Source of the DNA: Macrostomum lignano
Taxonomy: Eukaryota
Reading direction: 5' to 3'
NCBI GenBank assembly: GCA_002269645.1
Contig: NIVC01003626.1
Location: 1-34,817, forward strand
Length of the DNA: 34,817 nucleotides
In this document: one piece after another, positions 1-31,309 of the stretch
Numbering within the stretch: the stretch's first letter is position 1
Layout of the letters: every line of letters starts with the position of its first letter
Notes under the pieces: model-generated
What the model saw: the letters and a program-made list of their open reading frames with translations, nothing else
Databases searched by the model: none
Told to the model about the DNA's origin: nothing
Program-made: the position numbers and the translations under genes

Positions 1-2183
1 CTGGTCTGATTCTAAGAATTATGGCGACGCTTGCAGCGAAAGTACATTGAAATAAACAACGCATATCCCGTGAGGATTATCATCGAAGGAGTGATTGGAT
101 CGGTGTCAAGAGTGACATCGCCATCGATGATCTGTCATTCACGCTAGGACTGGCAAGCGCAGTCAGTCGCCAACTTTGCCAACTGTGCCACCAACACAGG
201 GACCAAACAGCGGTGTTCCTCAGAACTGCAATTTCGAACAAGGAGACTGCGGCTTCAAGAATTCCCAGTGGATACGTTTGACTGGATCCGGTCGCGCGGC
301 AGTGAAACTACAAGCTTCGTCAACAGGCGCCTGGCATTGACGCAAACACAGCTTCTAGCAGTGGCTACTACCTGTTCATTAGGAACAGCGAAGTGAGAAC
401 ACCTACAACAGATTCGCGCACACTTACACGCCCATCTACCGCACAAGCAAGTCAGATTGCTACATGAGACTAGCATATTACTTTACCGGACCTGCGCCCG
501 GAAGGTTGGACTTGTACCATGTTGACTTGAGAACCAACTCAAGCAACAGAATTTGGTATGTTCAGACTAACACAGGCGAGAAATGGACCTACACCAAAAT
601 TGGCCTGGGTGCTAGAAACTATCCCTTCCAGCTGTCATTCCAGCGTTCACCTCCTTCCACTATGACGGGATAGTGGCTATCAGATGATCTGACCTATGTG
701 GACTGCAGCTTCCCTCCCAAAGCTGACCAGTGCGACCAATTCTGGTGCACCAGCACCCGAGCCTGCGTCTCTACAGAATTCACCTGCGATATGAAGGACG
801 ACTGCGGCGATAATTCAGACGAAAGTCCGGCAATTTGCACCGGTTATCAGCAGCACTCATTCGAGCACGGGTTCGACGGCTGGAAGCAGGACTCCTCGCG
901 GAATGGCAACTGGGCAATGGAAAGGAAACAGGGCATCGCTTCTAGGCAGCGAAAGCGGGCCATCGTTCGATCATACAACGGAACACCCGATGGCTCCTAT
1001 GTCCTACTGTCGTCCAGCACCAATCCGTATGGTACAACTGCGTGGTTGATTAGCAAGAATTTCAAAGCGCCAAGAAGTCGAGAGCAGCCCTGTGTGATGC
1101 GGCTGTATTTTTTCCTGTACGGAAGATACAAGCCAAAGATTAATGTCTACACAAGGGCCTACTCAAACGGACCACCGACAAAGACTATATTTTACGCAGA
1201 TAGGAGATCAAGGAGACGTGTGGCTCCGTCAGGCAATACTGCTTGACCAAGAAACAACTGACTTCCAGGTCATCACCGAAGGAGTTACCAGCGATAGATA
1301 TCTTTCAGATGTAGCTTTTGACGACGTTATATTCTCACCTGAATGCGTAACTACCAATCAGGAGCTGCCAGTGAATCCAATGACCTTGCCGCCGTCTACC
1401 GCCTCTCCAACTTGGGCGCCGCACACCTGCATACCTGGTCAACAGTTTGCTTGCAAAAAGGATGGCAAATGTATTAATAAAAACCAGGTGTGCGATTTCC
1501 GCATCGATTGCATTGACGGCTCAGACGAGGAGAAATGCGTCTCGGCCACCTGTACATTCGAGTCTAGCAATCCCTGGTGCGGATGGACCCCATCTGGCGA
1601 TGCAAGGAACATGAGCAGCTACGTGTTTCTTAGAGACACTGGCGCCAACAGTCCAGATTATAAAGAAAGACCGAAAGTTGATCATACAACTGGCACCTCT
1701 GGTGGCTACTTTGTTTACGCCGACAGCTCCAGAGGTAGCGTGCATGACACTGCTCAGCTTGCTACTCCGGCCATCTCGCTCACCGGGCCGCAGTGCACCC
1801 TTTCCTTCTGGTACTATATGGACGGCTACTCCATCGCCACCCTGCAGGTGTACAGACAGTTCCAGGACCCTAGCGAATCGCAGACTCAGGAGCCGATGCG
1901 CCAGCTTTGGTTCCAGTCTGGTTCTCAAGGCAGCCAGTGGAATCTAGCCCGCTTGTTCCTGGACCCGTGGAGAGCTCACGCGTCATTTTCCAAGCAAAGA
2001 AGACCTACAACGGAGTGCACGGCGACATCGCGATCGACGACGTGACATTCGAGAACTGCCCACCGAAGCTGCCATCGGGGCAGTTGCATCGGCGGAGAGT
2101 ACCTGTGCAACAACATGGTGTGTATTAGCAATAGCCAACTGTGCGACTACGCAGACAACTGCGGCGATAGATCGGACGAGAGT
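1..2183 (+). CDS. MAM and LDL-receptor class A domain protein (MALRD1/MAMDC4-like), large internal exon, 5'-truncated by window, interrupted by single-base indels
   Basis: Frame-hopping translation gives MAM hallmarks (CNFEQGDCG, FDWIR, DHTTGTSGGYFVY, IAIDDLSF, VAFDDVIFSPEC, IAIDDVTFENC) alternating with LDLa repeats (CDMKDDCGDNSDE, CDFRIDCIDGSDE, CDYADNCGDRSDE). Ends at phase-0 donor AGT|GTGAGT (2184). Confidence 0.88.
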
Positions 2184-2481
2184 GTGAGTTGAAGTTGTTT
2201 ACTGGTGTAAAAGCATATTTAAATTTTCTGAATTCTTCACAATCAGCATAAGGTATACTAAGACGTTGTGTACTAGTAGAGCCTACTAAATGAACTGGCG
2301 ATACGAAAACTTTACGTTCCTTACGGGATGCCAGGTCATGTCTTCGTGTAGCTGCGTTCTTCTACTTCTGTTGTCTATGACTAAAGTAGTACCATAGTAG
2401 TACTACAGTGTTATTATTAAAGTAAGGCGCGGCATTAGTAAGGTGTCGCAAATCAGTATCTCAATACATCCTTCTTTACAG

Positions 2482-4631
2482 ACTACAAAATGCTCAGCCT
2501 ACGTCGGTCGATGCGACTTCGAGTCCGTGGGAATCTGTACTGACGACTGGAAGCAAGACGAAGATGACGAATTCGACTGGCGTGTAGCGCAGGGAGCCAC
2601 CAGTACGCCCACAACCGGACCAATGGTGGACCACACGACTCTGACTGGCGACGGGCACTACATGTACATTGAGACAAGCTCGCCACAAAAGCCTGGCTGG
2701 AAAGCTCGACTAAGCTCCTTTGTCATCCAGGGAGTCTCGTCTGATTGCTCGCTGAGGTTCTTCTATCACATGCAGGGCGACGACATCGGCGAGCTGAATG
2801 TGTACCTGCGCCACAGCTACGACGCTCAGCCAACTCGAATCTGGCACGAAGCGGGCCAGAAAGGGGATTGGTGGCTTCGAGCTGAAATCAATCTTAGCCA
2901 GGTGAACAGTCCGACGAAATCCGACTTTGAAATTGTCTTCGAGGGTATCGTTGGCGGATGGCTGGGCGACGTGGCAGTTGATGATATCTCCATGACGCCT
3001 GGTTGCCTGCGATCGCCGAACCAGCAGCTACCAGGAGCTCGCTCTACAGTGGCGCCAACTGCAGGTCCCTGCGGTCCAGGTCGGTACTCCTGCGATTCCG
3101 GACGGTGCTACTCTCAGGTGCAGATGTGCGACTTCAACTTCTTCTGCAAAGATCGCTCCGACGAGCTGTCTTGCGGAACTGACTGCGACTTTGAAACGGA
3201 CGGCGCTTGCGGTTGGCGCAACAGCTCGGGCGTTAGCGCGCTTTGGACTGTGCGGCAGGCCGGCGGCTGGGGGTTCCCGCCTGTGGACCACACAACCAAC
3301 CAGCCCAGCGGGTCGCTTATTGCGTTCCGACCCAACAGTGTGGATCAGAAGGACAAGCTCAAGGCCCATTTGCAAACCCTGACGTATCGCCATTCGGCTG
3401 CTATTTGTCAGTTTAGTCTTTGGTACTACATGAGCGCCGATAATGTTGGTACTCTGAGCGTTTGGATAAAGTCGGAGCACGGACTGGAGGCAAAGCCGCG
3501 ATTTTCTGTTTCCGGACGGCAAGGGGATTATTGGATTAACCAACTGGTTGACATTGGGCCAATGGCGGAGTTTAGCGTGGTCATCGAGGCTTTGCACAGC
3601 GGCCTTAGCACCAGCGGCGCCATTTCCCTGGATGATCTGCAGTTCATCAACTGCGAGCCCAAGGATATAATACCATACTGCGCCGCCAACAATGCACTGT
3701 GCTCAAACAGGCGTCAATGCGTGGACAAAAAGAACGTCTGCGACGGTGTGGCGCACTGCTCCGATGGTAGCGACGAGTTGAATTGTCCCAGCGTAGTCGG
3801 AGACTGTTCATTCGACCTGGCTGACTGGAGCGGCAGATGTCGCTACCAGGAGCTGCTCAATTCGACCGCCGATTGTCCCTATCAGCAAGCGGCCACGGTG
3901 ACCGAGGAGCAGTCAGGTCCGGTCACCGACCACTCGGGCAACGGCCAGTTCATCTTCAACTCGGACAGTGCGCCGGACTGCACTCGGCCTGGAGACTTGG
4001 CCTCCGTGCAGACACCGCGTATGCCGCCGACTCCGGCCGATCGGTACTGCTGGATCAGATTTTGGTACTACATGTGGGACAAGGAAGCTGCCGAGGGCAA
4101 CGCGGACAGCATGGGCAGCCTATCGGTCTATATCGACTACCAAGAAGGCGGCTCGCGAGGTCGACACCTGCTATGGCGCCGCATCGGTAATCAGGGTGGC
4201 GGTCCGGCCCGCACCGGATGGCAGAAGGCCGAGCAACGGCTCGACGGAATCCCGGCGGACTACGCCATAGTGTTCGAGGCGGCGAGAGGCGGCGGTCCTA
4301 GAACGGTGGTGGCCATAGACGATGTCAGCTTTACGCCCAGCTGTCGGCAGGCGAGCCCGGGCGAGAATGGCACTCTGGTGTGTTCGTCACCCGACGAGCT
4401 GGCCTGCAACGACTCGCTGAGCTGCTACCATTCGAGCTGGCGCTGCGACGGCCAGTTTGACTGTGCCGACGGGTCGGACGAGTCGGGCTGCCCGACCAGG
4501 GCGCCGCCGATTGGGGAGGGCGACATCGGCGGTCAAGTTGGCGCAATCGTAGGCGGAGTTATTGGAGCGATTGCGTTGGTGGCGGCTCTGGCGGCTGTTG
4601 GATGCCTTGTCTACAAGCGTCGGTTGGAAGT
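2482..4631 (+). CDS. MAM/LDLa protein, intact exon: 3 MAM + 3 LDLa domains and transmembrane helix
   Basis: Acceptor CTTCTTTACAG at 2481 is in phase 0 with the upstream exon (DES|TTKCSAYVGRCDFE). Uninterrupted ORF with MAM and LDLa motifs (CDGQFDCADGSDESGC) and hydrophobic VGAIVGGVIGAIALVAALAAVGCLVY followed by KRR. The ORF-track stop (4633-4635) lies inside a GTAAGT donor at 4632. Confidence 0.93.
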
Positions 4632-4666
4632 GTAAGTGGCAACGGCTTTTGCCTATACATATATAG

Positions 4667-5178
<512 letters not shown>

Positions 5179-6218: not shown

Positions 6219-7065
6219 GCCCTCTTTCCCTGCCCCTTTCCCCTGCCCCTCTCCCCTGCCCTCTCCCCTGCCCCTCTCCCTGCCCTCTCCCCCTGCGGAT
6301 CTCGCCCTGCCCCTCTCCCCTGCCCCTCTCCCCCTGCGGATCTCGCCCTGCCCCTCTCCCCTGCCCCTCTCCCCCTGCGGATCTCGCCCTGCCCCTCTCC
6401 CCTGCCCCTCTCCCCTGCCCCTCTCCCCTGCCTCTCTCCCCTGCCCCTCTCCCCCTGCCCCTCTCCCCTGCCCCTCTCCCCTGCCCTCTCCCCTGCCCCT
6501 CTCTCCTGCCCCTCTCCCCTGCCCTCTCCCCCTGCCTCTCTCCCCTGCCCCTCTCCCTCTGCCCCTCTCCCCCTGCCCCTCTCCCCCTGCCCCTCTCCCC
6601 TGCCCCTCTCCCCTGCCCCTCTCCTCTGCCCCTCTCCCCCTGCCCCTCTCCCCTGCCCCTCTCCCCTGCCCCTCTCCCCTGCCCCTCTCCCCTGCCCCTC
6701 TCCCCTGCCCCTCTCCCTGCCCCTCTCCCCTGCCCCTCTCCCTGCCCCTCTCCCCTGCCCCTCTCCCTGCCCCTCTCCCCTGCCCCTCTCCCCCTGCCCC
6801 TCTCCCCTGCCCCTCTCCCCTGCCCCTCTCCCCTGCCCCTCTCCCCTGCCCCTCTCCCCTGCCCCTCTCCCCCTGCCCCTCTCCCCTGCCCCTCTCCCCC
6901 TGCCCCTCTCCCCCTGCCCCTCTCCCCTGCCCCTCTCCCCTGCCCCTCTCCCCTGCCCCTCTACCCTGTTTCTCTCCTCCTGCCCCTCTCCCCTGCCTCT
7001 CTCCCTCTGTCTTTCTCTCCTTGCCCCTTTCTCTCTGCCCCTCTCTCTCTGCCCGTCTCCCCTTT
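6219..7065. repeat. C-rich 12-13 bp minisatellite (CCCTGCCCCTCT[C]); G-rich on minus strand
   Basis: Directly visible; includes three copies of a variant with GCGGATCTCG (6290-6390). Confidence 0.96.
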
Positions 7066-7359
7066 ATCGCTGCCCATCTTTTGTGAGCAATGGCAAGAGC
7101 ATCGGTAAGAAACGTAAGTGAAGTGCCAGCATAAAAAATAGCATTAAGTAGACAGCGGGAAAATGGGAGTGAAAATTATTTAAATGATTGTCAAGAGTAG
7201 AAACATCAGAACATGTTGAGGGAGGCCAAGGGGAGAGAAATGGTAAATATTTGGGGGGAATGAAGAGAAGTTAAAATGACGCATTCGAATAACTATAACA
7301 TTAATTTTGTCATATTTTAGTTTTGTTTTGTCCTCATCACCACAGCTGCATGTTGTTAC

Positions 7360-8617
7360 CTTTTTGTGAATGGTGGCAGCGTCTTTAAAAAACTTTCGAG
7401 TTTCTGCTTGCGCTCCCCTCTACCTGCGTCATGTCTTTCTCTAACGTGCCTGCCCAGGTCTCGGCCTCTGATTCTGGCTCCTTGCTCCTGCGTCTCTTGC
7501 TGCGGCTCAGCGGTCCCTGCGGCGCCTGCGGCTGGGTTCGTCTCGGGACTCGCAACGACTGTCGCATTGACACGGCTCATTGCTGAAACTGCATTGAGCA
7601 GTGGATTTAAAATAACTTGAGCGTCAGTGCTTCATCTTGACGAGCTTTGGCAGTGTCTCATGTTTCATTTTTTCTGTCTAAGGCTCCTTGAAATGGCGCT
7701 TAAAATGGAGAAATGGCGCTAGGGGGCGCCATTTCATTTGAGGGGCGCCATCTAGTCTGAGGGGTACCAGTTAGTCCGAGGGGGGCGCTAGTTAGTCTGA
7801 GGGGGTCCCAGTTAGTGGGACAGAGCGCCATATCTATATTTTTTCAGCCAATATTGGGGGGGGAGAGAGAGTCTACCTACGCCCTTGGTGACTACCTATT
7901 GGTCACTGGCAAATGCTTCTGGTTGAATGGTGATAAAAGATGAACAACCTGGCCTGCTATTTGGAATAATCTGCATTGTGGCATCGAAAACCGCTGTGAT
8001 CATGGATAATTGAGTGTCATCCCGCTCGAAGCCAGCATCGGAGTCTGAAAATTTTATCGCAGGTGTAAAAAACATTCGAGCTGCATCAGTGCTCGGCCAG
8101 AATTACAGTTCACATGACTACCTACCGAGCTCGCTGTCGGATGGCCAGTACCGTCGGTACCAACCATCCAAGTCCAAGTCAGGGTCGGCATCAACCGATG
8201 GAGCCATTCGGTAGCTGTCAACTGTAAGTTTTAAAGAAATAAAGCTTGAGTAAATGTTGGCGTCTGAATTTTAGACCTTACTCAATTTTAAAATATTGTT
8301 TGCATTTTCATACTAAACGTAAAAAACTTTCCATTTGCAAATTAACCTATCGTGGTAAAGCCGTTAAATATGACTATTAATATGAAGCAATGTTGCCTAC
8401 TAACTTTATGAAGTTTAAAAAGCAGGATAATTTCATATTTAGCGCTGAAAAAAAGTGACAAACCTCACTTGAGCATTTCCGCATGAGCAACTGATCCTAT
8501 AAGAGTCCGTTAGCTTACCTGATAGCTGAGATGAGTCCGAGTCGCTGTCGCTGTCCATCCGCTGATCTGAGTATCCGAGAGCATAGGAGGATGTTTTTGG
8601 ATTAGCGTACGGATATT
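7360..8617 (-). CDS. Ankyrin-RS protein, predicted exons 11-14: 8617-8519, 8221-8126, 8044-7949, 7582-7360
   Basis: Each has AG/GT ends and continues the frame in phase 1 without stops (EYPYANPK...DSDSDSDSSQLS; VDSYRMAP...; DSDAGFERDD...; AMSRVNATVV...PPFTK). The donor at 7948 (GTTGTT) is weak. The final exon is uncertain (7292 or 6119 acceptors both give short ends). Confidence 0.5.
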
Positions 8618-8674
8618 CTAAGGCGCATCGTGTTCTAGGCCAGTCTTATTAACGTGTTGGTTGCTTGGTAAGCA

Positions 8675-10181
8675 TCTTTGGGTGTGTCATCCCATCTGAC
8701 ACGCCACTTCATTTGAATGGGTGTCATTCCATCTTTGGTGACGCCACTTCATTTGGTTGAGTGCCATTCCATCTGAGGTGACGCCACTTCATTTTGATGA
8801 GTGCCATTCCATCTGAGGTGACGCCACTTCATTTGGGTGAGTGTCATTCCATCTGAGGTGACGCCACTTCATTTTGGTGAGTGCCATTCCATATGACGTG
8901 ACGCCACTTCATTTTGGTGAGTGCCATTCCATCTGAAGTGACGGCACTTCATTTAGGTGAGTGTCATTCCATCTGATGTGACGCCGCTTCATTTGCGTGA
9001 GTGTCATCCCATCTGAGGTGACGCCACTTCATTTGGATGGGTGTCATTCCATCTGAGGTGACGCCACTTCATTTAGGTGAGTGTCATTCCATCTGAGGTG
9101 ACGCCACTTCATTTGGATGGGTGTCATTCCATCTGAGGTGACGCCACTTCATTTGCGTGAGTGTCATCCCATCTGAGGTGACGCCACTTCATTTGGATGG
9201 GTGTCATTCCATCTGAGGTGACGCCACTTCATTTAGGTGAGTGTCATTCCATCTGAGGTGACGCCACTTCATTTTGGTGAGTGCCATTCCATATGACGTG
9301 ACGCCACTTCATTTAGGTGAGTGTCATTCCATCTGATGTGACGCCACTTCATTTGGGTGAGTGTCATTCCATCTGATGTGACGCCACTTCATTTGGGTGA
9401 GTGTCATTCCATCTGAGGTGACGCCACTTCATTTGCGTGAGTGTCATCCCATCTGATGTGACGCCACTTCATTTTGGTGAGTGCTATTCCATCTGATGTG
9501 ACGCCACTTCATTTAGGTGAGTCTCATTCCATCTGAGGTGACGCCACTTCATTTGGGTGAGTGTCATCCCATCTGAGGTGACGGCACTTCATTTAGGTGA
9601 GTGTCATCCCATCTGATGTGACGCCACTTCATTTGGGTGAGTCTCATTCCATCTGAGGTGACGCCACTTCATTTAGGTGAGTGCCATTCCATCTGAGGTG
9701 GCGCCGCTTCATTTGGGTGAGTGTCATTCCATCTGAGGTGGCGCCGCTTCATTTGGGTGAGTGCCATTCCATCTGAGGTGGCGCCGCTTCATTTGGGTGA
9801 GTGCCATTCCATCTGAGGTGGCGCCGCTTCATTTGGGTGAGTGCCATTCCATCTGAGGTGACGCCACTTCATTTTGATGAGTGCCATTCTGACGTGACGC
9901 CACTTCACTTGGGTGAGTGTCATTCCATCTGAGGTGACGCCACTTCATTTGGGTGAGTGTCATTCCATCTGAGGTGACGCCACTTCATTTTGATGAGTGC
10001 CATTCCATATGACGTGACGCCACTTCATTTTGGTGAGTGCCATTCCATCTGAAGTGACGGCACTTCATTTAGGTGAGTGTCATTCCATCTGATGTGACGC
10101 CGCTTCATTTGCGTGAGTGTCATCCCATCTGAGGTGACGGCACTTCATTTAGGTGAGTGTCATTCTAACTGAGGTGACGCT
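8675..10181. repeat. 40-bp minisatellite (GTGACGCCACTTCATTTGGGTGAGTGTCATTCCATCTGAG), ~37 copies, in predicted intron 10312-8618
   Basis: Directly visible 40-nt periodicity. Confidence 0.98.
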
Positions 10182-10312
10182 GATTTATTTGGTATTGAGA
10201 TATTCGATCAACTCAGTGTATTTTTGCAGGCAGACTTATATTTTCTGTTTTGCATCTCTAAAGTCAAAAGATCTAAGTAGCAAATGCATTAGCAATTAAA
10301 ATATGCTAATAC

Positions 10313-11258
10313 CTCGCTTAGTATTATCGTCCAGCGGCATTCCTTGGAACCGTCCGGATGGTGCATTCCTTGGCTGTGTTGGATTCTGGTCTCCTTCTAC
10401 CGGCAATCTTTCGGCTGAAGTTGGCCGGCGACCTCTTTGACCGCTGAAACGTCGACTGTTTGGCGGTTCACGCGAAGTTTGCGACCTGTGGCGGGGCGCA
10501 GGAGCCAGAGTGATTTCTTAGAACTCGCGGGCAGTTCAGTCAGTCAGTCAGTTACCGTGCACACAAGCTCAAATGAATCGAACCAAGGGTCGTGAGCCCG
10601 ATTCAAAACGCTTTTATACCTCCGAGCTGCTCATGCCCCATCATTCTACATTAATGTTTCTATTTAAATGACTCAATGCACTTGAATTCCGATATTGCTC
10701 ACCCTGTAGCGTCAGAAACCCCATTATTGCTTCTGGTTCCTGAAATTTCGGTTACAAAGCCAGCAAAAGGAATTATTGAAAATTCTCTGCACGGTCTGAA
10801 AAGGAAATCTTTTCAGAAGAATATCGATGTAATCACCTGGTTCGGCTTTTAAAATTGTCAAAGTTCCGCTTGGCGGGTTTCTTTGTATGACTTTTATTGT
10901 TTTCGTTTCCTTCTGAATGAGCTGGGGCTGCGGGTATACGCCTGAAAACGATGGAATGAGAAAAGGAAGCCGGTATGAGGATAGTTGCGTATGAGCAGTT
11001 GGTATACGATAAAAGATCCAAATAAATGAAGCTTTGTAAAATGGAAAATGTACATACTGATTGTTTGGTTGCTTGAAAATTCCGACCTGGAAGAAACCAA
11101 CGAAAATTATTCACGTTAGTACGAGTAGAACGAGAAGGTATCGAGTTAGTATCCAATTGTCCAATTGTAAAAAACAAATCATTCAAAACAAAATCAATAC
11201 CTGGTGAAATCCAGGCCACTTGAGCTAGCAGTAATCCTTCTGCTGGTCCCAGAAATAT
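10313..11258 (-). CDS. Ankyrin-RS protein, predicted small exons 5-10: 11258-11201, 11086-11058, 10941-10837, 10739-10703, 10645-10620, 10516-10313
   Basis: Six GT-AG-bounded segments (58, 29, 105, 37, 26, 204 nt) whose phases (1-2, 2-1, 1-1, 1-2, 2-1, 1-1) chain without stops; introns 57-117 nt. Confidence 0.55.
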
Positions 11259-11568
11259 CTGCAAAAGAACGATCGGATATCTAGATAGAAAGCAGTCGCC
11301 AAAACTGTTTTGTATTCAAGTACTGTAGCTAGGTAGCCAAGCCTAGCAAGTTAGTAGGTAGATGGACAGTTCTCAGATTCAAAAACATGGTTACAGCTCT
11401 ACTTTTAGATCTATCGTTAGCATTCCGAGAAAGGGCCACTGCAAAAACGCTTTTTTAATTCATTGACATTTTTCTTAGAAACTTAACGTCCAAGATTTTG
11501 AGTAATGTCTTTTATTCAGAAAATACGAGCCAATTTATAATAAAGTAATTAACTGTATTTAGACTCAC

Positions 11569-12588
11569 CTCTGTTGCTTCGGTTCGGGTGCTCGCTTTCA
11601 CTGTTTCTGCTTTTTCTACCGTTGCTAGTTTTAGTTGTTTTTTCCTTGCATTTTCCGTCTTCGCTGCTGCTGCTCCTTGTGCTAATGCTTATGATACGGC
11701 TTTCGCTTGGGCTTCTGCTTCTGCTAAAACTTCTGCTTTGGTTTCTGCTTCTCCTAGGGCTTCTGCTTCTGCTTCTGCTTCTGCTTCGACTTCTGCTTCT
11801 GCTAAAACTTATGCTTTGGTTTCTGCTTCTTCTAGGGCTTCTGCTTCTGCTTCTGCTTCTGATTTGACTTCTGCTTCTGCTAAAGCTTCTGCTTTGGTTT
11901 CTGCTTCTTCTAGGGCTTCTGCTTCTTCTAGGGCTTCTGCTTCTTCTAGGGCTTCTGCTTCTGCTAAAGCTTCTACTTCGACTTGAGCTTCTGCTGAAGC
12001 TTCTGCTTTGGTTTCTGCTTCTTCTAGGGCTTCTGCTTCTGCTAAAGCTTCTGCTTCGACTTCTGCTTCTTGTGCTTCTGCTGAGGCTTCTGTTAAGGTT
12101 TCTGCCAAGGAAGCCTCTATGTTTGCTTCGCTCCTTGTAGTGAACAGGAGCGAAGCGAACATTGAGTCTTCCTTGGTTGCTGCTAAGGCTTCTGCTTTTG
12201 CTTCGGTTTCTACTTTGGCTTCTGCTTCTGATGTCGCTTCTGCTGTTGTCGCTTCTGTTTCTACTTCTGCCGCTCTTGTCATTTTGTTTCTTGCTGTTCA
12301 TATTTTTGATTCCGCTACTTCTTTTGGTTTTGTCACGGCTGTCTTTAAATTCAGTTTCGTTTCTAAAACCATGCGCGCTCGAGCCTTCGTTTTTTGCGCT
12401 GCTGTTTCTGCTTCTTGTTCCACCGCTCCTGGGTTCTACATGTCTGCTTTCTCTGCGGCTCTCAGTGTTTCCTGTTGAGTTTACGGATTCTCGATTGTCC
12501 CTGTTAGGCCCTGCAGAGGCAGGCGAAGGCTGCAGGCCGCCAGATCGAGACGAGGGCGGTGGTCGCTTGCGGGTCGCTCTACTAGAAG
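11569..12588 (-). CDS. Ankyrin-RS protein, exon 4: 1020-nt Arg/Ser-rich (RS, RSP) low-complexity domain
   Basis: Acceptor AAATTCCAG (12589), donor AGAG|GTGAGT (11568), phase 1-1. Open only in the RS frame across the whole exon; extends the 11549..12301 ORF 95 codons upstream. Confidence 0.75.
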
Positions 12589-12702
12589 CTGGAATTTATG
12601 AAAGTTTGGCATAATTGAAGCCTCTACTATTATCCAAAACTTTATTACCGAAAATAGCAAAAAGTCATCAGAGAAACCAGCAACAGGGGTGCCAGCCACG
12701 GA

Positions 12703-13253
12703 ATCTCAGCAACTCTCCACTTGACCCATGACATCTCAGCAACTCTCCACTTGCCCCATGACATCTCAGAAACTCTCCACTTGACCCATGACATCTCAGC
12801 AACTCTCCAATTGACCCATGACATCTCAGAAACTCTCAAATCGACCCATGACATCTCAGAAACTCTCAAATCGACCCATGACATCTCAGCAACTCTCCAC
12901 TTGACCCATGACATCTCAGCAACTCTCCACTTGCCCCATGACATCTCAGCAACTCTCCACTTGACCCATGACATCTCAGCAACTCTCCACTTGACCTATG
13001 ACATCTCAGCAACTCTCCAATTGACCAATGACATCTCAGAAACTCTCAAATCGACCCATGACATCTCAGCAACTCTCCACTTGCCCCATGACATCTCAGC
13101 AACTCTCCACTTGACCCATGATCTCAGCAACTCTCCACTTGACCTATGACATCTCAGCAACTCTCCAATTGACCCATGACATCTCAGAAACTCTCAAATC
13201 GACCCATGACATCTCAGCAACTCTCCACTTGACCCATGACATCTCAGCAACTC
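12703..13253. repeat. 30-bp minisatellite (CATGACATCTCAGCAACTCTCCACTTGACC), intronic
   Basis: Directly visible, ~18 copies. Confidence 0.97.
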
Positions 13254-14275
13254 CCTCTTGAGCTCTATGGCATCTCAGTCAGCAGCTCCCTCTTGAGCTC
13301 TATGGCATCTCAGCAACTCCCTCTTGAGCTCTATGGCATCTCAGCAACTCCCTCTTGAGCTCTATGGCATCTCAGTCAGCAGCTCCCTCTTGAGCTCTAT
13401 GGCATCTCAGCAACTCCCTCTTGAGCTCTATGGCATCTCAGCAACTCCCTCTTGAGCTCTATGGCATCTCAGTCAGCAGCTCCCTCTTGAGCTCTATGGC
13501 ATCTCAGCAACTCCCTATTGAGCTGTATGGCATCTCAGCAACTTCCTCTCGAGCTCTATGGCATCTTAGCAACTCCCTCTTGAGCTCTATGGCATCTCAG
13601 CAACTCCCTCTTGAGCTCTATGGCATCTCAGCAACTCCCTCTTGAGCTCTATGGCATCTCAGTCAGCAGCTCCCTCTTGAGCTCTATGGCATCTCAGCAA
13701 CTCCCTCTTGAGCTCTATGGTATCTCAGCAACTCCCTCTTGAGCTCTATGGCATCTCAGCAACTCCCTCTTGAGCTCTATGGCATCTCAGCAACTCCCTC
13801 TTGAGCTCTATGGCATCTCAGCAACTCCCTCTTGAGCTCTATGGCATCTCAGTCAGCAGCTCCCTCTTGAGCTCTATGGCATCTCAGCAACTCCCTCTTG
13901 AGCTCTATGGCATCTCAGTCAGCAGCTCCCTCTTGAGCTCTATGGCATCTCAGCAACTCCCTATTGAGCTGTATGGCATCTCAGCAACTTCCTCTCGAGC
14001 TCTATGGCATCTTAGCAACTCCCTCTTGAGCTCTATGGCATCTCAGCAACTCCCTCTTGAGCTCTATGGCATCTCAGCAACTCCCTCTTGAGCTCTATGG
14101 CATCTCAGCAGCTCCCTCTTGACCTCTATGGCATCTCAGCAACTCCCTCTTGAGCTCTATGGCATCTCAGCAACTCCCTCTTGAGCTCTATGGCATCTCA
14201 GCAACTCCCTCTTGAGCTCTATGGCATCTCAGCAACTCCCTCTTGAGCCATGTCATCTCAGAAACTCCCCCCGAT
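13240..14275. repeat. 31/35-bp minisatellite (GAGCTCTATGGCATCTCAGCAACTCCCTCTT, some units with an extra 4 nt), intronic
   Basis: Directly visible, ~31 copies; shares the core CATCTCAGCAACTC with the adjoining 30-bp array. Confidence 0.97.
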
Positions 14276-14414
14276 ATCTCAGCTATTACCCTTTATTACT
14301 TTTGAGAGCCCTGGCCTAACCCAAACCCTAGCTTCTTGATTAGTACACTCTTATTTTACTCACTGGTTGTCGTTCTTGTACGGAATCAAACAAGCATGTA
14401 TGGGCTAAACTTAC

Positions 14415-14597
14415 CTAATTGTCTGTTTCTACCGCGAGGCGGCTGTTGTCGATTTGGTTCGATAACTAAAATACGTCGCAAGGTTTCATATGATCACTTG
14501 TGCACTGAACATCATCAAGGTATTTGTGAAAAATATCTAAAATGCCACTTACAGACAGGCTGCGGCACCGGTCTTTTAGCTCTATCGAGTTTCTTAG
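14415..14597 (-). CDS. Ankyrin-RS protein, exons 2 and 3: 14597-14553 (45 nt) and 14465-14415 (51 nt)
   Basis: Acceptors TTCATTGACAG and TATTTTAG, both donors GTAAGT, both phase 1-1; read AKKLDRAKRPVPQPV and FIEPNRQQPPRGRNRQL. Confidence 0.7.
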
Positions 14598-14807
14598 CTG
14601 TCAATGAAAGATGAGAGCAAACGTTTTTGGTAGATTTTTTATGATGCAAAATAAATAGGAACTGAAAGAACTGCTAGGAACAGTTTTGACTGCTCCTATA
14701 GCAGTTCCTATAAAATGCCTCACTGGATACAACTTTAGCGTTAAAAACCGAATACTAAGCTTTAACAGTAGACAATTAACCAGTAAGTTAATAGGAAGTA
14801 AGTTAAT

Positions 14808-14970
14808 CCTCTCTCCTCTCGTAGGAATACGAGAGGAGAGAGGAGAGAAGAGAGAGGGAGAGAGGAGAGGAGAGGGAAGAGGGGGAAGAGGAGAGGGGGG
14901 AAGAGATGGGGAGAAACGAGAGGGTGGGAGGAGAGGAGAGAAGAAGGCGAAAGAAGAGAGGAGAGACACG
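14808..14970. repeat. GA-rich low-complexity tract in intron 1 of the ankyrin gene
   Basis: Directly visible. Confidence 0.85.
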
Positions 14971-15039
14971 TTCGTACGTGTAAAGCTTTCTCAATGATTG
15001 AACAAACGTGCGCAGAAACTCCTCTGCCGAGGACCGTAC

Positions 15040-16024
15040 CTTTCCTTGTGCATTCGCTAATAGCCGACTCGATAAGTTTTTTTGCGGGCACGGTTACAAT
15101 GGCATTCGCTCTGCAGTTCTCCTGCAGATACTGAATCGGGGTTTTCCCAAAACTGTCCCTAATTCGAGGATCGGTGCCGTTATTCAGCAGCATCGCCTGC
15201 AATTTGCCGCTTTGCTCAACCTTGACGATGTACCGTTGGCACAGGTAAAGCGTGTGCAAAGGTGTTCTGCCATACCTGTCAATCTTGTTCACACTTGCAC
15301 CTTTTCGGCGAACCAAGTCGGCCATGTCTGCAATCTCCTCAGTGCTGTAGTAGCATGAAGACAAGAGATGGAGAGCTGTAAAGCCATCCCCTTTTCTCAT
15401 CACCATCTGAAAGTCAAAATCCGACCAGTGCTCCATCAGGACCTCCAGAACCTGCTTCGGGCTGTAGCAGCGCAGTTCTTCTTTCATTTTCCGCCTCGAC
15501 ATCTGCTGCAGCCCAAGAAATAGCAGCTGGAAAGAGTTGCAGCCTTGCGAGTTGACTACGTCCTTGACAATGAAGCCTTCTAGAGCTGACTGATGCCGAA
15601 CAACTTCTGCGGCACCCATCCAGCAAGCGGTAAGAAACTTGAATTTATTGAATTCGCCAGCAGCATCCTCTTCATATAAGAATTCAATTAGCATTTTACG
15701 AAACTCTCTTTTGCACCTGCTCAATAAGCCAAGATCCTCAGCTAAGTAAGTGGGATCGCCGCCAAACTCGAGTATTAACTTCCCAGCCTCTGTCTTGTTG
15801 TACCTGGCAGCAAGAATTAGCATTGTCCAGCCCAGGTGGTTCACGGGTTTGTTCACTATTCCTGGGTTGGCTTCCAACTTTTTCCTAATATTGTTTAAAA
15901 AGGTGGTGTTGATGTATTCTCCGTCTTGACTTCGGGTTATCCAATCTATGAGACTGCGAGCCACTTCAAAAGAAATTGAGTCATTGTCTCCTTCCCGCTG
16001 ATTTTGGTCTCTGGCGCTTATCAT
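15040..16024 (-). CDS. Ankyrin-repeat protein, first coding exon (328 codons)
   Basis: Ankyrin motifs VNHLGWTMLILAARYNKTEAGKLILEFGGDP, GDGFTALHLL, GASVNKIDRYGRTPLHTL, GTDPRIRDSFGKTPIQYL. An in-frame TGA immediately precedes the ATG. Phase-1 donor AAAG|GTACGG at 15039; the ORF-track tail after it is intronic low complexity. Confidence 0.9.
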
Positions 16025-17543: not shown

Positions 17544-19310
17544 TGTAAAATGCTTAAAATTAAACAGGCTTGACGGCTTGGAAACCAAATCCCACCGTTG
17601 CTACACCAAAGGTAGAAGGTCTTAAATTTATTAAACTTGACGTTGTTAATTGTTAAACCCAGCACGATACTTATTACTAACGAGTAGTATTTCACGGACC
17701 AGCGATCTGATACTCGAAGGAATTGGGTTAATCGTCTCGCCCGTTCTAGATTTCCGCTGGGGTATTTGTCTCACTAGGAGTCTAGATTTCCGCTGGGGTA
17801 TTTGTCTCACTAGGAGTCTAGATTTCCTCTGGGCTATTTGTCTCACTAGGAGTCTAGATTTCCTCTGGGCTATTTGTCTCACTAGGAGTCTAGATTTCCT
17901 CTGGGCTATTTGTCTCACTAGGAGTCTAGATTTCCTCTGGGCTATTTGTCTCACTAGGAGTCTAGATTTCCTCTGGGCTATTTGTCTCACTAGGAGTCTA
18001 GATTTCCTCTGGGCTATTTGTCTCACTAGGAGTCTAGATTTCCTCTGGGCTATTTGTCTCACTAGGAGTCTAGATTTCCTCTGGGCTATTTGTCTCACTA
18101 GGAGTCTAGATTTCCTCTGGGCTATTTGTCTCACTAGGAGTCTAGATTTCCTCTGGGCTATTTGTCTCACTAGGAGTCTAGATTTCCTCTGGGCTATTTG
18201 TCTCACTAGGAGTCTAGATTTCCTCTGGGCTATTTGTCTCACTAGGAGTCTAGATTTCCTCTGGGCTATTTGTCTCACTAGGAGTCTAGATTTCCTCTGG
18301 GCTATTTGTCTCACTAGGAGTCTAGATTTCCTCTGGGCTATTTGTCTCACTAGGAGTCTAGATTTCCTCTGGGCTATTTGTCTCACTAGGAGTCTAGATT
18401 TCCTCTGGGCTATTTGTCTCACTAGGAGTCTAGATTTCCGCTGGGCTATATTCGTCCCACGGGTTTTTGTCCAACAACAGGATAATACGTCACCCTGGAC
18501 TCTTAGCCGGTGATGACTCAGCGTCTGGCTCGGATTAATTGGGCTAATTGTCCGCGAACTCTAAATTTGCTGAGTGAGCGGTTCCTCTATTCCACAAATA
18601 TCCCAAATAACTTAGAATAACGGTAGCTGCGATGACAGGGTCTAATTAGGGCTAAAATTTTTATCTTGCACCAGCCGAAGAGCGGTACCCTGAGATGGTC
18701 TGATAGCGTGCGACCAATAAATTTCTTGATAATTTGCGTGCCCTCCCGAATCGATATGATTAATCCCAATTCTTTTATATATTTCACGGAAGGTAGTTCG
18801 CTGCCACCAATCGAAGCTATAGTTAAAATTGACTGAGACAAGTCGCTTGAATTAAGAATTTAATTAGTTGGGACTTAATAAATTGGAAGTAGCTTCAGAT
18901 TAGTAATTAACAAATATAATTATCAAAACTTATTAATTAACTAGAGCACAAGCAGAACAAAGAGTAATAAAAACTTAACATTGAATAATTAACAATTATT
19001 ATTAATAATCAATAATTAATAACAATTACTATTAATAATTAATAAGTAAGATCTACAACTTCTTCTCAATAGTTAAGAATTTCGAGATCCTCTTACTCAT
19101 GTCGAGTATTCGTAACTAGATCTATCACTCACTGATTATATTTATGCACCAATTGGCCGGGCTTCACACAAGCCAATATTAATTACCGGCGGGAACTTCC
19201 GCAACAAAGACTAGGCGGACCGTCGCAACAAGGGCAAACCAGGGCAGAGCGGGCGCCCTTCAAATTGGAGCGCGGTATATTTATACCAATTAGTCTGGTG
19301 CATTTTAACA
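17544..19310 (-). mobile_element. Degenerate LTR-like/non-autonomous element candidate
   Basis: Inverted termini TGTAAAATGC (17544) and GCATTTTAACA (19310), i.e. TG...CA; tRNA-Leu-primer-like motifs on the minus strand; no TSD and no gag/pol coding sequence found. Confidence 0.3.
17746..18449. repeat. 36-bp minisatellite (CTAGATTTCCTCTGGGCTATTTGTCTCACTAGGAGT), ~19.6 nearly identical copies
   Basis: Directly visible; central units identical. Confidence 0.98.
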
Positions 19311-23950: not shown

Positions 23951-25002
23951 CCCAGATCCTCAGTTGCTGGGCCAGCATCCCAGATCCTCAGTTTCTGGGC
24001 GAGCCTCCCAGATCCCCAGTTGCTAGGCCAATCTCAGATCCCCAGTTGCTGGGCCAGTCTCAGATCCCCAGTTGCTGGGCCAGTCTCAGATCCCCAGTTG
24101 CTGGGCCAGTCTCTCAGATCGTCAGTTTCTGGGCCAGCCTCCCAGGTCCTCAGTTTCTGGGCCAGCCTCCCAGATCCCCAGTTGCTGGGCCAGCCCCCCA
24201 GAGTGTCAGTTGCTGGGCCGGCCTCCCAGCGTGTCAGTTGCTGGGCTAGCCTCCCAGATCCTCAGTCTCTGGGCCAGCCTCTCAGATCCCCAGTTGCTGG
24301 GCCAGCCTCCCAGATGCTCAGTTGCTGGGCCAGCCTCCCAGATGCTCAGTTGCTGGGCCAGCCTCCCAGATCCCCAGTTTCTGGGCCAGCCTCCCAGATC
24401 CTCAGATGCTGGGCCAGCCTCCCAGATGCTCAGTTGCTAGGCCAGCCTCCCAGATCCCCAGTTTCTGGGCCAGCCTCCCAGATCGTCAGTTGCTGGGCCA
24501 GCCTCGCAGATGCTCAGTTTCTGGGCCAGCCTCCCAGAGTGTCAGTTGCTGGGCCGGCCTACCAACGTGTCAGTTGCTGGGCCAGCCTCCCAGATGCTCA
24601 GTTGCTGGGCCAGCCTCCCAGATCCCCAGTTTCTGGGCCAGCCTCCCAGATCCTCAGATGCTGGGCCAGCCTCCCAGATGCTCAGTTGCTGGGCCAGCCT
24701 CCTAGATCCCCAGTTTCTGGGCCAGCCTCCCAGATCCTCAGATGCTGGGCCAGCCTCCCAGATGCTCAGTTGCTGGGCCAGCCTCCCAGATCCCCAGTTT
24801 CTGGGCCAGCCTCCCAGATCGTCAGTTGCTGGGCCAGCCTCGCAGATGCTCAGTTGCTGGGCCAGCCTCCCAGATGCTCAGTTGCTGGGCCAGCCTCCCA
24901 GATGCTCAGTTGCTGGGCCAGCCTCCCAGCAGATGCTCAGTTGCTGGGCCAGCCTCCCAGAGTGTCAGTTGCTGGGCCAATCTCCCAGATCCTCAGATGC
25001 CT
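23951..25002. repeat. 28-bp minisatellite (CCCAGATGCTCAGTTGCTGGGCCAGCCT), ~37 copies
   Basis: Directly visible. Confidence 0.97.
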
Positions 25003-27235: not shown

Positions 27236-28862
27236 GGCATACAGACAGGGGATACAGACAGGGCATACAGACAGGGCATACAGACAAGGCATACAGACAG
27301 GGCATACAGACAGGGCATACAGACAGGGCATGCAGACATGGCATACAGACACTGCATACAGACAGGGCATACAGACAGGGCATACAGACAGGGCATACAG
27401 ACAGGGCATACAGACACTGCATACAGACAGGGCATACAGACATGGCATACAGACACTGCGTACAGACAGGGCATACAGACAGGGCATACAGACAGGGGAT
27501 ACAGACAGGGCATACAGACAGGGCATACAGACAAGGCATACAGACAAGGCATACAGACAGGGCATACAGACAGGGCATACAGACAGGGCATGCAGACATG
27601 GCATACAGACACTGCATACAGACAGGGCATACAGACAGGGCATACAGACAGGGGATACAGACAGGGCATACAGACACTGCATACAGACACTGCATACAGA
27701 CAGAGCATACAGACATGACATACAGACACTGCGTACAGACAGGGCATACAGACAGGGCATACAGACAGGGGATACAGACAGGGCATACAGACACTGCATA
27801 CAGACAGGGCATACAGACAGGGCATACAGACACTGCATACAGACAGGGCATACAGACAGGGCATACAGACACTGCATACAGACAGGGCATACAGACAGGG
27901 CATGCAGACATGGCATACAGACAGGGCATACAGACATGGCATACAGACAGGGCATACAGACAGGGCATGCAGACATGGCATACAGACACTACATACAGAC
28001 AGGGCATACAGACAGGGCATGCAGACACTGCATACAGACAGGGCATACAGACAGGGCATACAGACGGGATACAGACAGGGCATACAGACACTGCACACAG
28101 ACAGGGCATACAGACAGGGCATGCAGACACTGCATACAGACAGGGCATACAGACAGGGCATACAGACAGGGCATGCAGACATGGCATACAGACAGGGCAT
28201 ACAGACAGGGCATGCAGACACTGCATACAGACAGGGCATACAGACAGGGCATGCAGACACTGCATACAGACAGGGCATACAGACAGGGCATACAGACAGG
28301 GCATACAGACAGGGCATGCAGACATGGCATACAGACAGGGCATACAGACAGGGCATGCAGACACTGCATACAGACAGGGCATACAGACAGGGCATGCAGA
28401 CACTGCATACAGACAGGGCATACAGACAGGGCATACAGACAGGGCATACAGACAGGGCATGCAGACATGGCATACAGACAGGGCATACAGACAGGGCATG
28501 CAGACACTGCATACAGACAGGGCATACAGACAGGGCATACAGACAGGGCATGCAGACACTGCATACAGACAGGGCATACAGACAGGGCATACAGACAGGG
28601 CATGCAGACATGGCATACAGACACTGCATACAGACACTGCATACAGACAGGGCATACAGACAGGGCATACAGACAGGGCATGCAGACATGGCATACAGAC
28701 AGGGCATGCAGACACTGCATACAGACAGGGCATACAGACAGGGCATACAGACAGGGCATACAGACACTGCATACAGACACTGCATACAGACACTGCATAC
28801 AGACACTGCATACAGACAGGGCATACAGACAGGGCATACAGACAGGGGATACAGACAGGGCA
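27236..28862. repeat. 14-bp minisatellite (GCATACAGACAGGG), ~116 copies, within candidate leader intron 27147-28920
   Basis: Directly visible; flanked by donor AAG|GTAAGA (27147) and acceptor TTTTTCAG (28920) with an upstream TACTAAT branch-like site. Confidence 0.97.
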
Positions 28863-29030
28863 CTTTCCCCATATAGTTAAGTATAACAATTTTAATGTTA
28901 CTAATTAATGCATTTTTCAGTTACTGTCAGCTCAGTGCAGCTTCAGTCTATCAGTTCAAATCAGTTCCAATAATCAAGTAATAAACAATAATCTATTGTC
29001 AGCCCGAACTACTAATTAGCTAAAATAATC

Positions 29031-29372
29031 ATGCTTGGCAACGCTCCCATCGGTGATCGGAAACGCAAGATCTATAATACTAATAGTAGCAATAACGCTG
29101 GCGGAGGGCTTGGGCCCAGGCATCAGCCTCCAGCCCCAATGATGTCGCTAATGATGCATCAGGGGCCTGGTCAGGCTCCGATGCCGCCTCATCATCAGTT
29201 TGGCAGCAGTGGAAATGGCCAGCAGATGATGCAGATGCCAGCTATTGGTGCAGCTTCCGGCCCCGCTGCTGCCGCCCAGATGGGCCCCGGCATTGGCGGC
29301 CCAACCTGCGTGCTGTTTGTGAGCGAGATACCGCAGAATACTTGCGAGTTGGAGCTTAAACGAGTTTTCCAG
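29031..29372 (+). CDS. HNRNPL: hnRNP L-like protein, exon 1 (Q/P/G/M-rich N-terminus, RRM1 start)
   Basis: GPTCVLFVSEIPQNTCELELKRVFQ then CAG|GTGAGT, phase 0. Confidence 0.85.
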
Positions 29373-29418
29373 GTGAGTTCATTTATGTGAATGAATGCGT
29401 GAGTTGAAAGTACGGAAA

Positions 29419-29830
29419 TATGTGACAGTCTGGGTTAAAGTGTGACAGCCTGTAACTTAATATGTGACAGCTCGTGAGTTTATGTGTGACAGCCTGTAAA
29501 TGAATTTGTGACAGCCTGTAACGAAATATGTGACAGCTCGTGAGTTAATGTGTGACAGCCTGTGAGTTAATGTGTGACAGCCTGTAAATGAATTTGTGAC
29601 AGCCTGTAACGAAATGTGTGACAGCTTGTGAGTTAATGTGTGACAGCCTGTAAATGAATTTGTGACAGCCTGTAACGAAATGTGTGACAGCTCGTGAGTT
29701 AATGTGTGACAGCCTGTAAATGAACGTGTGACAGCTTGAGAGTTAAAGTGTGACAGTCTATGAGTGTGACAGAGTCAGCGTGATGTGCCTGAGTGTGACT
29801 GTGTGAGGACTAAGACTTGATGGCTGTGAC
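29419..29830. repeat. Degenerate ~23-bp TGTGACAGC-core repeat, hnRNP L-like intron 1
   Basis: Directly visible. Confidence 0.9.
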
Positions 29831-29933
29831 AGTGTTGGCCGTGAGATCATATACAAGTTAACTTACAAGAACCCGTGAATTGCCAGCAGCGATCAGCTGA
29901 ACTCAAATCCAACCAACCTTGTCCCTCGCTCAG

Positions 29934-30235
29934 GAGTTCGGCAAACTGGAGCAGATCCAGCTGATGCCGGCCAAAGGCCAGGCTCTGGTTGAATTTCTTC
30001 GCTTATCAGACGCTGAACGCCTGATGTCAATGTGCCAGTCCGGCTATATCATTGCAGCTAATGGCGGCAACCTGACTGTCTGCTTTGCTAACAGGCAGCG
30101 GATTGACCAGGGACTGGAGTCCTATCAGTCTGCCACTCCACAGACCTGCCTGCTGCTCACATTCTACAATGTGCGAATGGATTTTAACTGCGAGTCTATC
30201 AGGCAGATTTGCGGTCCCTATGGCATTGTGGATCG
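29934..30235 (+). CDS. HNRNPL: hnRNP L-like protein, exon 2 (RRM1, RRM2 start)
   Basis: EFGKLEQIQLMPAKGQALVEF...LLLTFYNVRMDFNCESIRQICGPYGIVDR; acceptor CGCTCAG, donor CG|GTGAGT (phase 2). Confidence 0.9.
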
Positions 30236-30254
30236 GTGAGTGTTCACGCTGCTA

Positions 30255-31278: not shown

Positions 31279-31309
31279 AGCCACTCCCAACCATCTCCCT
31301 ACCCAACAG

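Follow-up and report, generated by a model that had tools for sequence, protein, structure and literature searches.

The classical arginine/serine (RS) domain has been defined as a stretch of at least 50 amino acids (aa) with more than 40% R+S and repeated RS/SR dipeptides (Manley and Krainer 2010, as quoted in PMC9479744), and proteins have also been classed as SR-related by composition when S and R each make up at least 20% of a 20-residue window and together at least 70% (PMC9479744). SR-related proteins without an RRM are known, such as SRRM1 and SRRM2 and the kinases, cyclophilins and helicases that carry RS domains (PMC9479744). In the accessible part of the supplement to a survey of such proteins, ankyrin-repeat (ANK) proteins with S/R tracts occur sporadically and the tracts are short, 19-38 aa, for example in a kinase+ANK protein of Daphnia (Cascarina and Ross 2022, PMC9479744). 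Here we describe, in contig NIVC01003626.1 of Macrostomum lignano (assembly GCA_002269645.1), a candidate gene in which an ankyrin domain would be followed by a long RS domain. The window, i.e., the whole stretch of 34,817 nucleotides (nt) that was analyzed, carries on its minus strand a chain of 14 putative exons (Table 1) with a predicted product of 1025 aa. The reading favoured here, to which we give a probability of roughly 0.45, is that of a real, lineage-specific Macrostomum ANK gene whose coding sequence extends into an RS exon born from a repeat and then probably to an acidic C-terminal part, several of the small exons being tentative. That the locus holds a real flatworm-specific (Macrostomum) gene is probable.

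The chain was proposed in an earlier sequence-only reading, whose author recognised no characterised family that pairs ANK repeats with an RS domain. This agrees with our comparisons, as no characterised family with ANK repeats and a long RS domain was found in the literature or among relatives: none of the best 150 ANK relatives (0 of 150) had an RS tract, and the hits of the RS exon were weak ones to RRM-type plant SR proteins. The canonical SR splicing factors (SRSF1-12) share the RS composition and the dipeptide repeats with the predicted protein, but the latter has no RRM, its RS tract is internal instead of C-terminal, and it would be about four times larger. No RRM was detected with Pfam, searched with the ANK part and with the C-terminal 310 aa, nor with NCBIfam, searched with the ANK exon and the RS exon, and no other non-ANK domain was found in these searches. 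Because the RRM is missing, the model cannot be counted among the canonical SR proteins, and the protein, if translated, would belong to the loose class of SR-related proteins. With the RRM-less members of that class it has in common a long S/R tract with many RS/SR dipeptides, SPRR motifs and a folded module other than an RRM, but it differs from them in that its partner domain is an ankyrin solenoid and in having no sequence homology to known members.

In cofactors of the ANKRD11/ANKRD12 type, which act as nuclear adaptors, an ANK block at the N-terminus precedes a charged and very long region of disorder. The likeness to them lies in a small ANK head joined to hundreds of residues of charged, S/R/K-rich disorder; the disordered regions of ANKRD11/ANKRD12, however, are K/E/S-rich and not made of RS-dipeptide repeats. 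Membership of the model in this family is not supported, with no homology past generic ANK repeats and no homologue of the C-terminal 369 aa. Protamines are small and more arginine-rich. The SPRR and RSRS motifs and the strong positive charge of the RS region recall protamine-like sperm nuclear basic proteins, one of the possibilities raised from the sequence alone, but this reading fits poorly with a large protein of 1025 aa that has a folded ANK head, an acidic tail and a core with 35% R, and which is therefore not small, overwhelmingly basic and arginine-dominated in the manner of a protamine. No described Macrostomum protamine matching the model was found in the literature.

The ankyrin exon is the solid part of the model. 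An ankyrin N-terminus had been claimed from the letters, and it was borne out by the Pfam profiles Ank_2 (3e-10, 40.9 bits; cut-off 27.3), Ank (3e-9, 37.1 bits; cut-off 21.1) and Ank_5 (4e-9, 37.2 bits; cut-off 27), which place repeats at residues 62-92, 191-258 and beyond; at least two tandem repeats of ~33 residues, the criterion of the Ank clan, thus stand above the cut-off. In the PDB, DARPin-type consensus proteins matched residues 190-305, which correspond to three ANK repeats (E = 3e-25 to 1e-8), and tankyrase and ankyrin-1 were also among the nearest solved structures. With these three consensus repeats at 190-305 and one repeat at 62-92 the head resembles generic ankyrin-repeat proteins, but it differs from them in residues 1-60 and 95-185, which matched nothing. 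AlphaFold2, run on the single sequence with no alignment, returned an all-helical model of the ankyrin part with a mean predicted local distance difference test score (pLDDT) of 37.8, too low for the model to be used. The ankyrin open reading frame (ORF; 16024-15041, minus strand) is 98% identical over 261 aa, with four of the 261 residues different, to UniProt A0A1I8JFC8, a 292-aa 'ANK_REP_REGION domain-containing protein' of M. lignano, and judged by this identity it is another copy or allele of that gene. A0A1I8JFC8 aside, no orthologue of the exon was found among 1.84 billion representatives, the other matches being multi-repeat proteins that share the repeat motif only (residues 184-310). 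The locus had been called unannotated-looking, which holds for the rest of the gene, as it has no protein database entry, and not for the ankyrin part.

Splice sites (394 GT sites and 866 acceptors in the set of the locus) were scored with a generic weight matrix not trained on this organism, and codon usage was scored with a model trained on the neighbouring MAM/LDLa gene alone, using sense codons only and ignoring stops. In this model the frame of exon 1 ranked 1st of 6, which serves as an independent positive control, and its donor at 15040 scored at the 98th percentile. A TGA stands in frame directly before the ATG at 16024. At 16059 on the same strand, 35 nt upstream of that ATG, there is a good 3' acceptor, TTGATCACAG/GA (score 3.3; the slash marks the exon boundary here and below), which is a candidate spliced-leader trans-splice site or end of a 5'-untranslated-region intron. 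An unspliced read-through of the ANK ORF to 14762 (420 aa) was also considered and was rejected, since the additional 92 codons are CT-rich simple repeat and the annotated copy splices at 15040. The repeat in question, (TCCTCTC)n on the minus strand at 14831-14966, lies in intron 1 about 75 nt past the ANK-exon donor and is the source of the 420-codon ORF with its meaningless S/L/P-rich tail.

The RS exon occupies most of an open frame of 348 codons (12595-11552), with an acceptor TTCCAG/ 7 nt inside the frame and a donor GAG/GTGAGT, of joint best donor score in the locus, 17 nt before its stop. If translated in that frame, the exon product qualifies as an RS domain by the classical definition and also by composition, in accordance with the domain assignment made from the letters. 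S+R exceeds 40% over residues 438-731 of the model (294 aa), and a 148-aa core with at least 70% S+R contains 41% S, 35% R and 75 RS/SR dipeptides. The 20-residue windows reach a maximum of 95% S+R and merge into the regions 468-497 and 522-669, and the net charge of the RS region is +50 over 140 aa. In about half of the exon (~11705-12110) Tandem Repeats Finder identified periods of 18, 48 and 78 nt, which mark a decayed (AGAAGC)n array. As such arrays are open in several frames, this repeat half is no evidence of coding. The non-repeat 5' 478 nt, on the other hand, are stop-free in the RS frame alone, the other frames having 3 and 14 stops (P ~0.003 in resamples). T makes up only 10% of the coding strand of the RS exon and stops are thus rare in it. 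Four in-register 45-nt units of the repeat differ at four sites, three of which are synonymous in the RS frame and one of which leads to a stop in the +1 frame, a small sample; in a fixed-lag self-comparison the units were out of register, with 23-34% mismatch and a similar synonymous fraction in all frames. The first in-frame ATG of the exon is codon 96, so that with a start of its own the 95 open codons before it would be left unexplained.

The phase of the ANK donor at 15040 (1) agrees with the RS frame at two acceptors of the RS exon, 12588 and 12510, which scored 2.9 and 5.5, respectively, vs 0.24 for an acceptor giving an exon start at 12581; the CAG at 12588 provides the first AG downstream of the pyrimidine tract. 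The model of A0A1I8JFC8 uses the same donor 15040 and continues at 12581, 7 nt inside exon 4 and in frame +1; by tblastn its residues 262-292 lie on 12582-12484 in a frame other than RS. In the copy described here, the +1 frame from 12581 is open for 33 codons up to a stop at 12483-12481. The shared donor and the landing at the 5' edge of the RS exon would link both exons physically, though not in the RS frame. It is plausible that the short tail of A0A1I8JFC8 comes from an automated model of a draft assembly that was truncated at a masked low-complexity repeat. In the GenBank annotation of a later M. lignano assembly, transcripts overlapping repeats were removed (PMC5730564), and the absence of the rest of the gene from protein databases would be explained by this procedure. 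Between the two large exons lie the mini-exons 2 and 3, neither of which is in the A0A1I8JFC8 model. Exon 2 has an acceptor at the 98.5th percentile and a GTAAGT donor and was found by the anchored gene finder when the penalty was 4-6 bits, its codon evidence being not significant; exon 3, also found by the gene finder, has a donor TAG/GTAAGT of joint best score in the locus.

When the minus-strand chain was re-derived, its 14 segments (16024 to 7582-7360) joined into 3074 nt with zero stops, and 13 of 13 introns began with GT and ended with AG, as had been claimed. The uncertain last exon of that account is not needed, as one base past the 3074 nt completes an AGG codon that is followed by TAA at 7358-7356, and the model closes at 1025 codons. 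The claimed layout also agrees with the composition of the model: an ankyrin head, a basic S/R/N/K-rich stretch, an S/R core, a P/R-rich exon 10 and the acidic D/S-rich exons 11-13, which contain the DSDSDS motif and have a net charge of -13. Exons 1, 4, 7, 10, 11, 12 and 13 run from phase 1 to phase 1, and the small exons form frame-neutral sets (45 nt; 51 nt; 58 + 29 = 87 nt; 37 + 26 = 63 nt), so that the frame survives the skipping of any set. Genes of M. lignano have a mean size of 7.5-9.4 kb with ~5 introns of 1.1-1.4 kb (PMC5730564), and compared with these figures the gene size and the intron sizes of the model are normal. The ankyrin domain, the open frames, the splice-signal quality and the RS composition are shown by the sequence; from it we infer that the exons are joined in one mRNA and that the RS frame is the translated one. 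Support is graded along the chain: it is solid for exon 1, good for exon 4 and exons 11-13, moderate for exons 2, 3 and 5-8, and weak for exons 9, 10 and 14 and for the junction of exons 13 and 14. The small exons 9 and 10, this junction and the ANK-to-RS link in the RS frame are to be regarded as candidate features.

A stop-free GT-AG chain alone is not beyond chance, because such chains were also obtained from order-2 Markov resamples of the downstream 4.6 kb (11568-7000; n=100; same chain rules), in which the best chains had 3-5 exons and 340-540 coding nt. The best minus-strand chain of 11568-7000, however, scored 29.3 bits vs 13.1 +/- 4.2 in the resamples, none of which (0/100) reached 29.3; the plus strand of the same region scored 8.1 and four control regions 13-20. 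The donors of the proposed chain include 9 of the 14 best among 394 minus-strand GT sites, and the acceptors of exons 7, 6 and 5 rank 1st, 2nd and 4th of 866. A simple gene finder, anchored at either the ANK donor or the RS-exon donor, independently recovered exons 2, 3, 5, 6, 7, 8 and 12 and the terminal exon; it departed from the model at exons 9, 10, 11 and 13 and, in the RS exon, favoured the acceptor 12510, which gives the same frame. The locus carries a real strand-specific exon signal, and the exact proposed chain is not uniquely supported. The count of at least 14 exons was over-precise in this respect, considering the weak sites at exons 9 and 10 and at the 13/14 junction and the codon-usage frame ranks of exons 3, 7 and 10 (5th or 6th). 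Against stop-free segments from elsewhere in the window, the codon scores gave z = 3.8 for exons 11-13, 2.1 for exon 14, 1.7 for exon 10, 1.1 for exons 5-9 and 0.8 for exons 2-3, values that may be somewhat inflated as the null was drawn from a more AT-rich part of the window.

Among the downstream exons, exon 5 was found by the anchored gene finder at every penalty tried, and the intron between exons 4 and 5 has the best combined site score of the locus (6.4 + 6.7 = 13.1 bits). Exon 6, which is frame-neutral in combination with exon 5 (87 nt), was found at penalties of 2-4 bits and dropped at 6; exon 7 was found as well, but at penalty 6 it was read in a different frame. Exons 5-8 contain no Met and therefore need an upstream coding exon. 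In the region of exons 5-7 (10727-11315, minus strand) each of the three minus-strand frames stays open for 70-160 codons within the same ~500 nt, and because of this unusually low stop density the frame assignment there is ambiguous. Exon 9 has an acceptor at the 63rd and a donor at the 90th percentile and was missed by the gene finder; an ATGATG within it could be a start codon instead. The sites of exon 10 are also weak (78th and 94th percentiles), the gene finder favouring an acceptor at 10485 in another phase. Exons 11, 12 and 13 each have frame rank 1 of 6, exon 12 at the 99.6th percentile of null windows; the acceptor of exon 11 is weak and the gene finder favours 8566, and exon 13, if left unspliced at its weak donor, would run into a TAG at 7898-7896. 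The best chains of the gene finder end in exon 14 with an acceptor at 7588 or 7582, although the codon evidence for this exon is weak (frame rank 3 of 6, z = 2.1). No canonical AATAAA was found within 1.4 kb after exon 14.

Table 1. Positions of the putative exons, signals, repeats and neighbouring genes in the window
Feature	Position	Strand	Remarks
Exon 1	15040..16024	-	ATG at 16024 to donor AAG/GTACGG; 328-aa ankyrin-repeat domain
Exon 2	14553..14597	-	45 nt, frame-neutral; candidate cassette exon
Exon 3	14415..14465	-	51 nt, frame-neutral; candidate cassette exon
Alternative acceptor CTAG/T	12581..12583	-	AG at 12583-12582, exon start 12581; deduced from the model of the near-identical copy (A0A1I8JFC8); frame +1
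Exon 4 (RS exon)	11569..12588	-	340 codons; 30% S, 25% R; 100 RS/SR dipeptides
AATAAA	11511..11516	-	33 nt past the read-through stop of exon 4; possible alternative 3' end in intron 4 (composite terminal exon)
Exon 5	11201..11258	-	58 nt; acceptor TTTTGCAG/ ranks 4th of 866
Exon 6	11058..11086	-	29 nt; acceptor TTCTTCCAG/ ranks 2nd of 866; donor weak, 88th percentile
Exon 7	10837..10941	-	105 nt; best acceptor of the locus, TTTTCAG/G; 4th best donor
Exon 8	10703..10739	-	37 nt; donor AGG/GTGAGC at 98.5th percentile; found at penalties of 2-4 bits
Exon 9	10620..10645	-	26 nt, doubtful; serves only to restore the frame (exons 8 + 9 = 63 nt)
Exon 10	10313..10516	-	204 nt, rich in P/R/Q; boundaries doubtful; occupies the 73-codon open frame 10517-10299
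Exon 11	8519..8617	-	99 nt; start of the acidic D/S block; donor CAG/GTAAGC, joint best score
Exon 12	8126..8221	-	96 nt; acceptor and donor each at the 95th percentile or higher; exact match in the gene finder
Exon 13	7949..8044	-	96 nt; donor CAG/GTTGTT weak (93rd percentile), no consensus past GT
Exon 14 (terminal)	7356..7582	-	includes stop TAA 7358-7356; open frame 7631-7359
31-nt minisatellite	12703..14269		~50 copies; most of intron 3 (Tandem Repeats Finder)
40-nt minisatellite	8701..10180		37 copies; most of intron 10 (Tandem Repeats Finder)
MAM + LDL-receptor class A gene, 3' part	1-4635	+	receptor-like, alternating domains; convergent with the ankyrin gene
Multi-exon RRM gene, PTB/hnRNP-L type	~29016-32246	+	RRM_5 at 31821-32249 (E = 5.6e-21); RRM_1 at 29919-30239

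Several results weigh against the favoured reading. In codon usage the frame of the RS exon ranks 3rd of 6, that of exon 7 5th, and those of exons 3 and 10 6th (z = 1.7 for exon 10 vs stop-free null segments), and several splice sites of the chain are weak. The proposed chain of exons 5-14 sums by hand to ~0 bits at the 6-bit intron penalty and ~18 bits at 4 bits, where the means of the resamples were 13.1 and 19.0. The introns between exons 10-14 (1695, 297, 81 and 366 nt) are all multiples of 3, so that these exons share one genomic frame (region 7583-10312), which is either a 1-in-81 coincidence or a sign of over-fitting to a single-frame ORF track. A one-frame pattern is what over-fitting would give, and the codon evidence of exons 11-13 is the only independent argument for the part made of exons 10-14. 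Moreover, the tandem repeats of the window routinely yield ORFs of 250-580 codons, up to 581, and an AATAAA follows the read-through stop of exon 4 by 33 nt. Among 5.8 billion proteins the RS exon had no match beyond composition (three weak hits, all to RRM-type plant SR proteins) and the C-terminal 369 aa had no homologue at E <= 0.01; the homology search that had been suggested as a check thus placed the ankyrin part, with A0A1I8JFC8 and generic ANK proteins, and returned nothing for the C-terminus. Because neither the RS exon nor the C-terminal 369 aa has homologues, the non-ANK part is not validated by conservation. The sole external gene model, A0A1I8JFC8, stops 31 residues into the RS exon in another frame. 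Between that copy and ours, 9 residues differ in the first 33 codons of the RS exon and there is a 2-residue indel (4 of 261 residues in the ANK exon), and the implied base changes, reconstructed by hand, show no excess at third positions of the RS frame; the start of the RS exon therefore looks nearly neutral. This divergence fits a weakly constrained disordered region as well as non-coding sequence. Overall, the observation made from the letters was partly confirmed and its interpretation partly supported.

Some of these points could also be explained by a shorter gene, in which the ANK exon is spliced to the acceptor 12581, 31-33 further codons lead to the stop at 12483-12481, and the remainder of the RS exon is 3' untranslated region (UTR) or non-coding repeat kept open by its T-poor, purine-rich composition. 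This is exactly the structure of A0A1I8JFC8, and it would accommodate the ORFs of up to 581 codons given by other repeats in the window, the rarity of stops on a strand with 10% T, the fast divergence at the start of the exon and the codon rank of 3 of 6. Against it, the CAG at 12588 precedes the TAG, has the better score (2.9 vs 0.24) and gives the RS frame, and the 478 non-repeat nt are open in the RS frame alone (P ~0.003); a 3' UTR would need neither a top donor 17 nt before the end of the frame nor the three best acceptors of the locus afterwards, and the UniProt entry was predicted automatically on a draft assembly. We consider the shorter gene unlikely. About as unlikely in our view is a division of the locus into two transcription units, the ANK+RS gene ending after exon 4. 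With the RS-exon donor unused, a TAA follows at 11551-11549, and the ANK+RS protein would be ~706 aa, with a poly(A) signal at 11516; the downstream part, at least exons 10/11-14 and perhaps from the ATGATG of exon 9, would then be a small acidic-protein gene or partly non-coding. The AATAAA 33 nt past that stop and an ATTAAA at 11459, also in intron 4, are in line with such a division. So are the poor acceptor of exon 9 next to its ATGATG, the weakness of the links via exons 9 and 10, which are the weakest in the chain, the clear coding character of exons 11-13 in their own right, and the report that ~39% of M. lignano genes undergo spliced-leader trans-splicing (PMC5730564). However, the donor of exon 4 and the acceptor of exon 5 form the strongest intron of the locus (13.1 bits), exons 5-8 are recovered in a phase compatible with the RS frame, and the AATAAA, one of 8 in 11.7 kb, lies in AT-rich, intron-like sequence where such hexamers are commoner.

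A decaying or silent duplicate, i.e., an unexpressed paralogue with an intact ANK exon and the remainder drifting, appears improbable. In M. lignano, 180-312 Mb of sequence is duplicated at >=95% identity (PMC5730564), the start of the RS exon diverges fast and carries an indel, and neither the RS part nor the C-terminal part matched a protein from the M. lignano annotations on deposit; but no stop or frameshift has accumulated over 1025 codons, the ANK exon differs from the other copy at 4 of 261 residues, the splice signals are intact, and the absence from the annotations would be explained by the dropping of repeat-overlapping transcripts from the GenBank annotation (PMC5730564).

Under the favoured reading of one lineage-specific ANK gene, the first exon would supply an ankyrin protein-binding domain and would be spliced from the donor at 15040, possibly via the two frame-neutral mini-exons, into the 1-kb RS exon encoding a long, basic, disordered arginine/serine tract. 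This tract would have been born when a tandem repeat of the (AGAAGC)n type expanded and decayed within coding sequence, in a genome rich in tandem repeats. The transcript would most likely run through further short exons, whose exact set is tentative, to the acidic D/S part (exons 11-13) and end near 7356. The product would be an SR-related (RRM-less) nuclear protein, whose RS tract could be phosphorylated by SRPK/CLK-type kinases and could direct the protein into the nucleus and its partitioning there into RS-rich assemblies, for example speckles, spliceosomal complexes or complexes associated with chromatin. To these assemblies the ankyrin solenoid may bring a protein client, and the basic tract could be countered by the acidic, CK2-like block of DSDSDS. 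It is the composition of the predicted product that suggests this function as a nuclear adaptor. The strongest form of the proposal is doubtful as a whole. It holds that a protein of 1025 aa (or ~706 aa) is made and is the first characterisable combination of an ankyrin client-binding head with a genuine, long RS domain, serving as an SR-related adaptor specific to flatworms that tethers a partner to RS-rich nuclear condensates, and that its RS domain was recently born from an AGAAGC-type minisatellite in a coding exon. If it were true, the gene would be a case in which the origin of an RS domain can be dated.

Expression of the ANK-RS fusion would add an unusual partner domain to the SR-related class and provide a clean example of a tandem DNA repeat giving rise, in a repeat-rich genome, to a low-complexity domain of the RS type; should the modelled form not be expressed, the locus would be an ordinary orphan ankyrin gene beside a repeat-derived ORF. 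The question would be tractable by experiment, as transgenesis and RNA interference (RNAi) are established in M. lignano. The locus also illustrates an annotation problem, since repeat-aware pipelines truncate or drop genes with tandem repeats in exons or introns.

Tandem repeats are extremely dense in the window. Rfam and tRNA scans detected no RNA genes in the window, where Tandem Repeats Finder returned 53 rows, corresponding to ~24 non-overlapping arrays and roughly 13 kb of 34.8 kb (~38%, summed by hand), with periods of 4-114 nt, up to 125 copies and many long spurious ORFs in several frames; examples are 6220-7063, 8701-10180, 12703-14269, 17745-18449, 23951-25000, 27236-28862, 30256-31281 and 32289-33293. 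Genome-wide, simple and tandem repeats make up 15% in M. lignano (PMC5730564). Of the two neighbouring genes, the MAM/LDLa gene was recognised by the MAM profile (E = 1.6e-85) in a 730-aa ORF at 2443-4635 on the plus strand, and is directly followed by a (GTCT)126 microsatellite at 4666-5171. The RRM gene is unrelated to the ANK-RS gene, being located on the opposite strand and 13 kb apart, and a (TGTC)n microsatellite at 31718-31950 lies between or within its exons.

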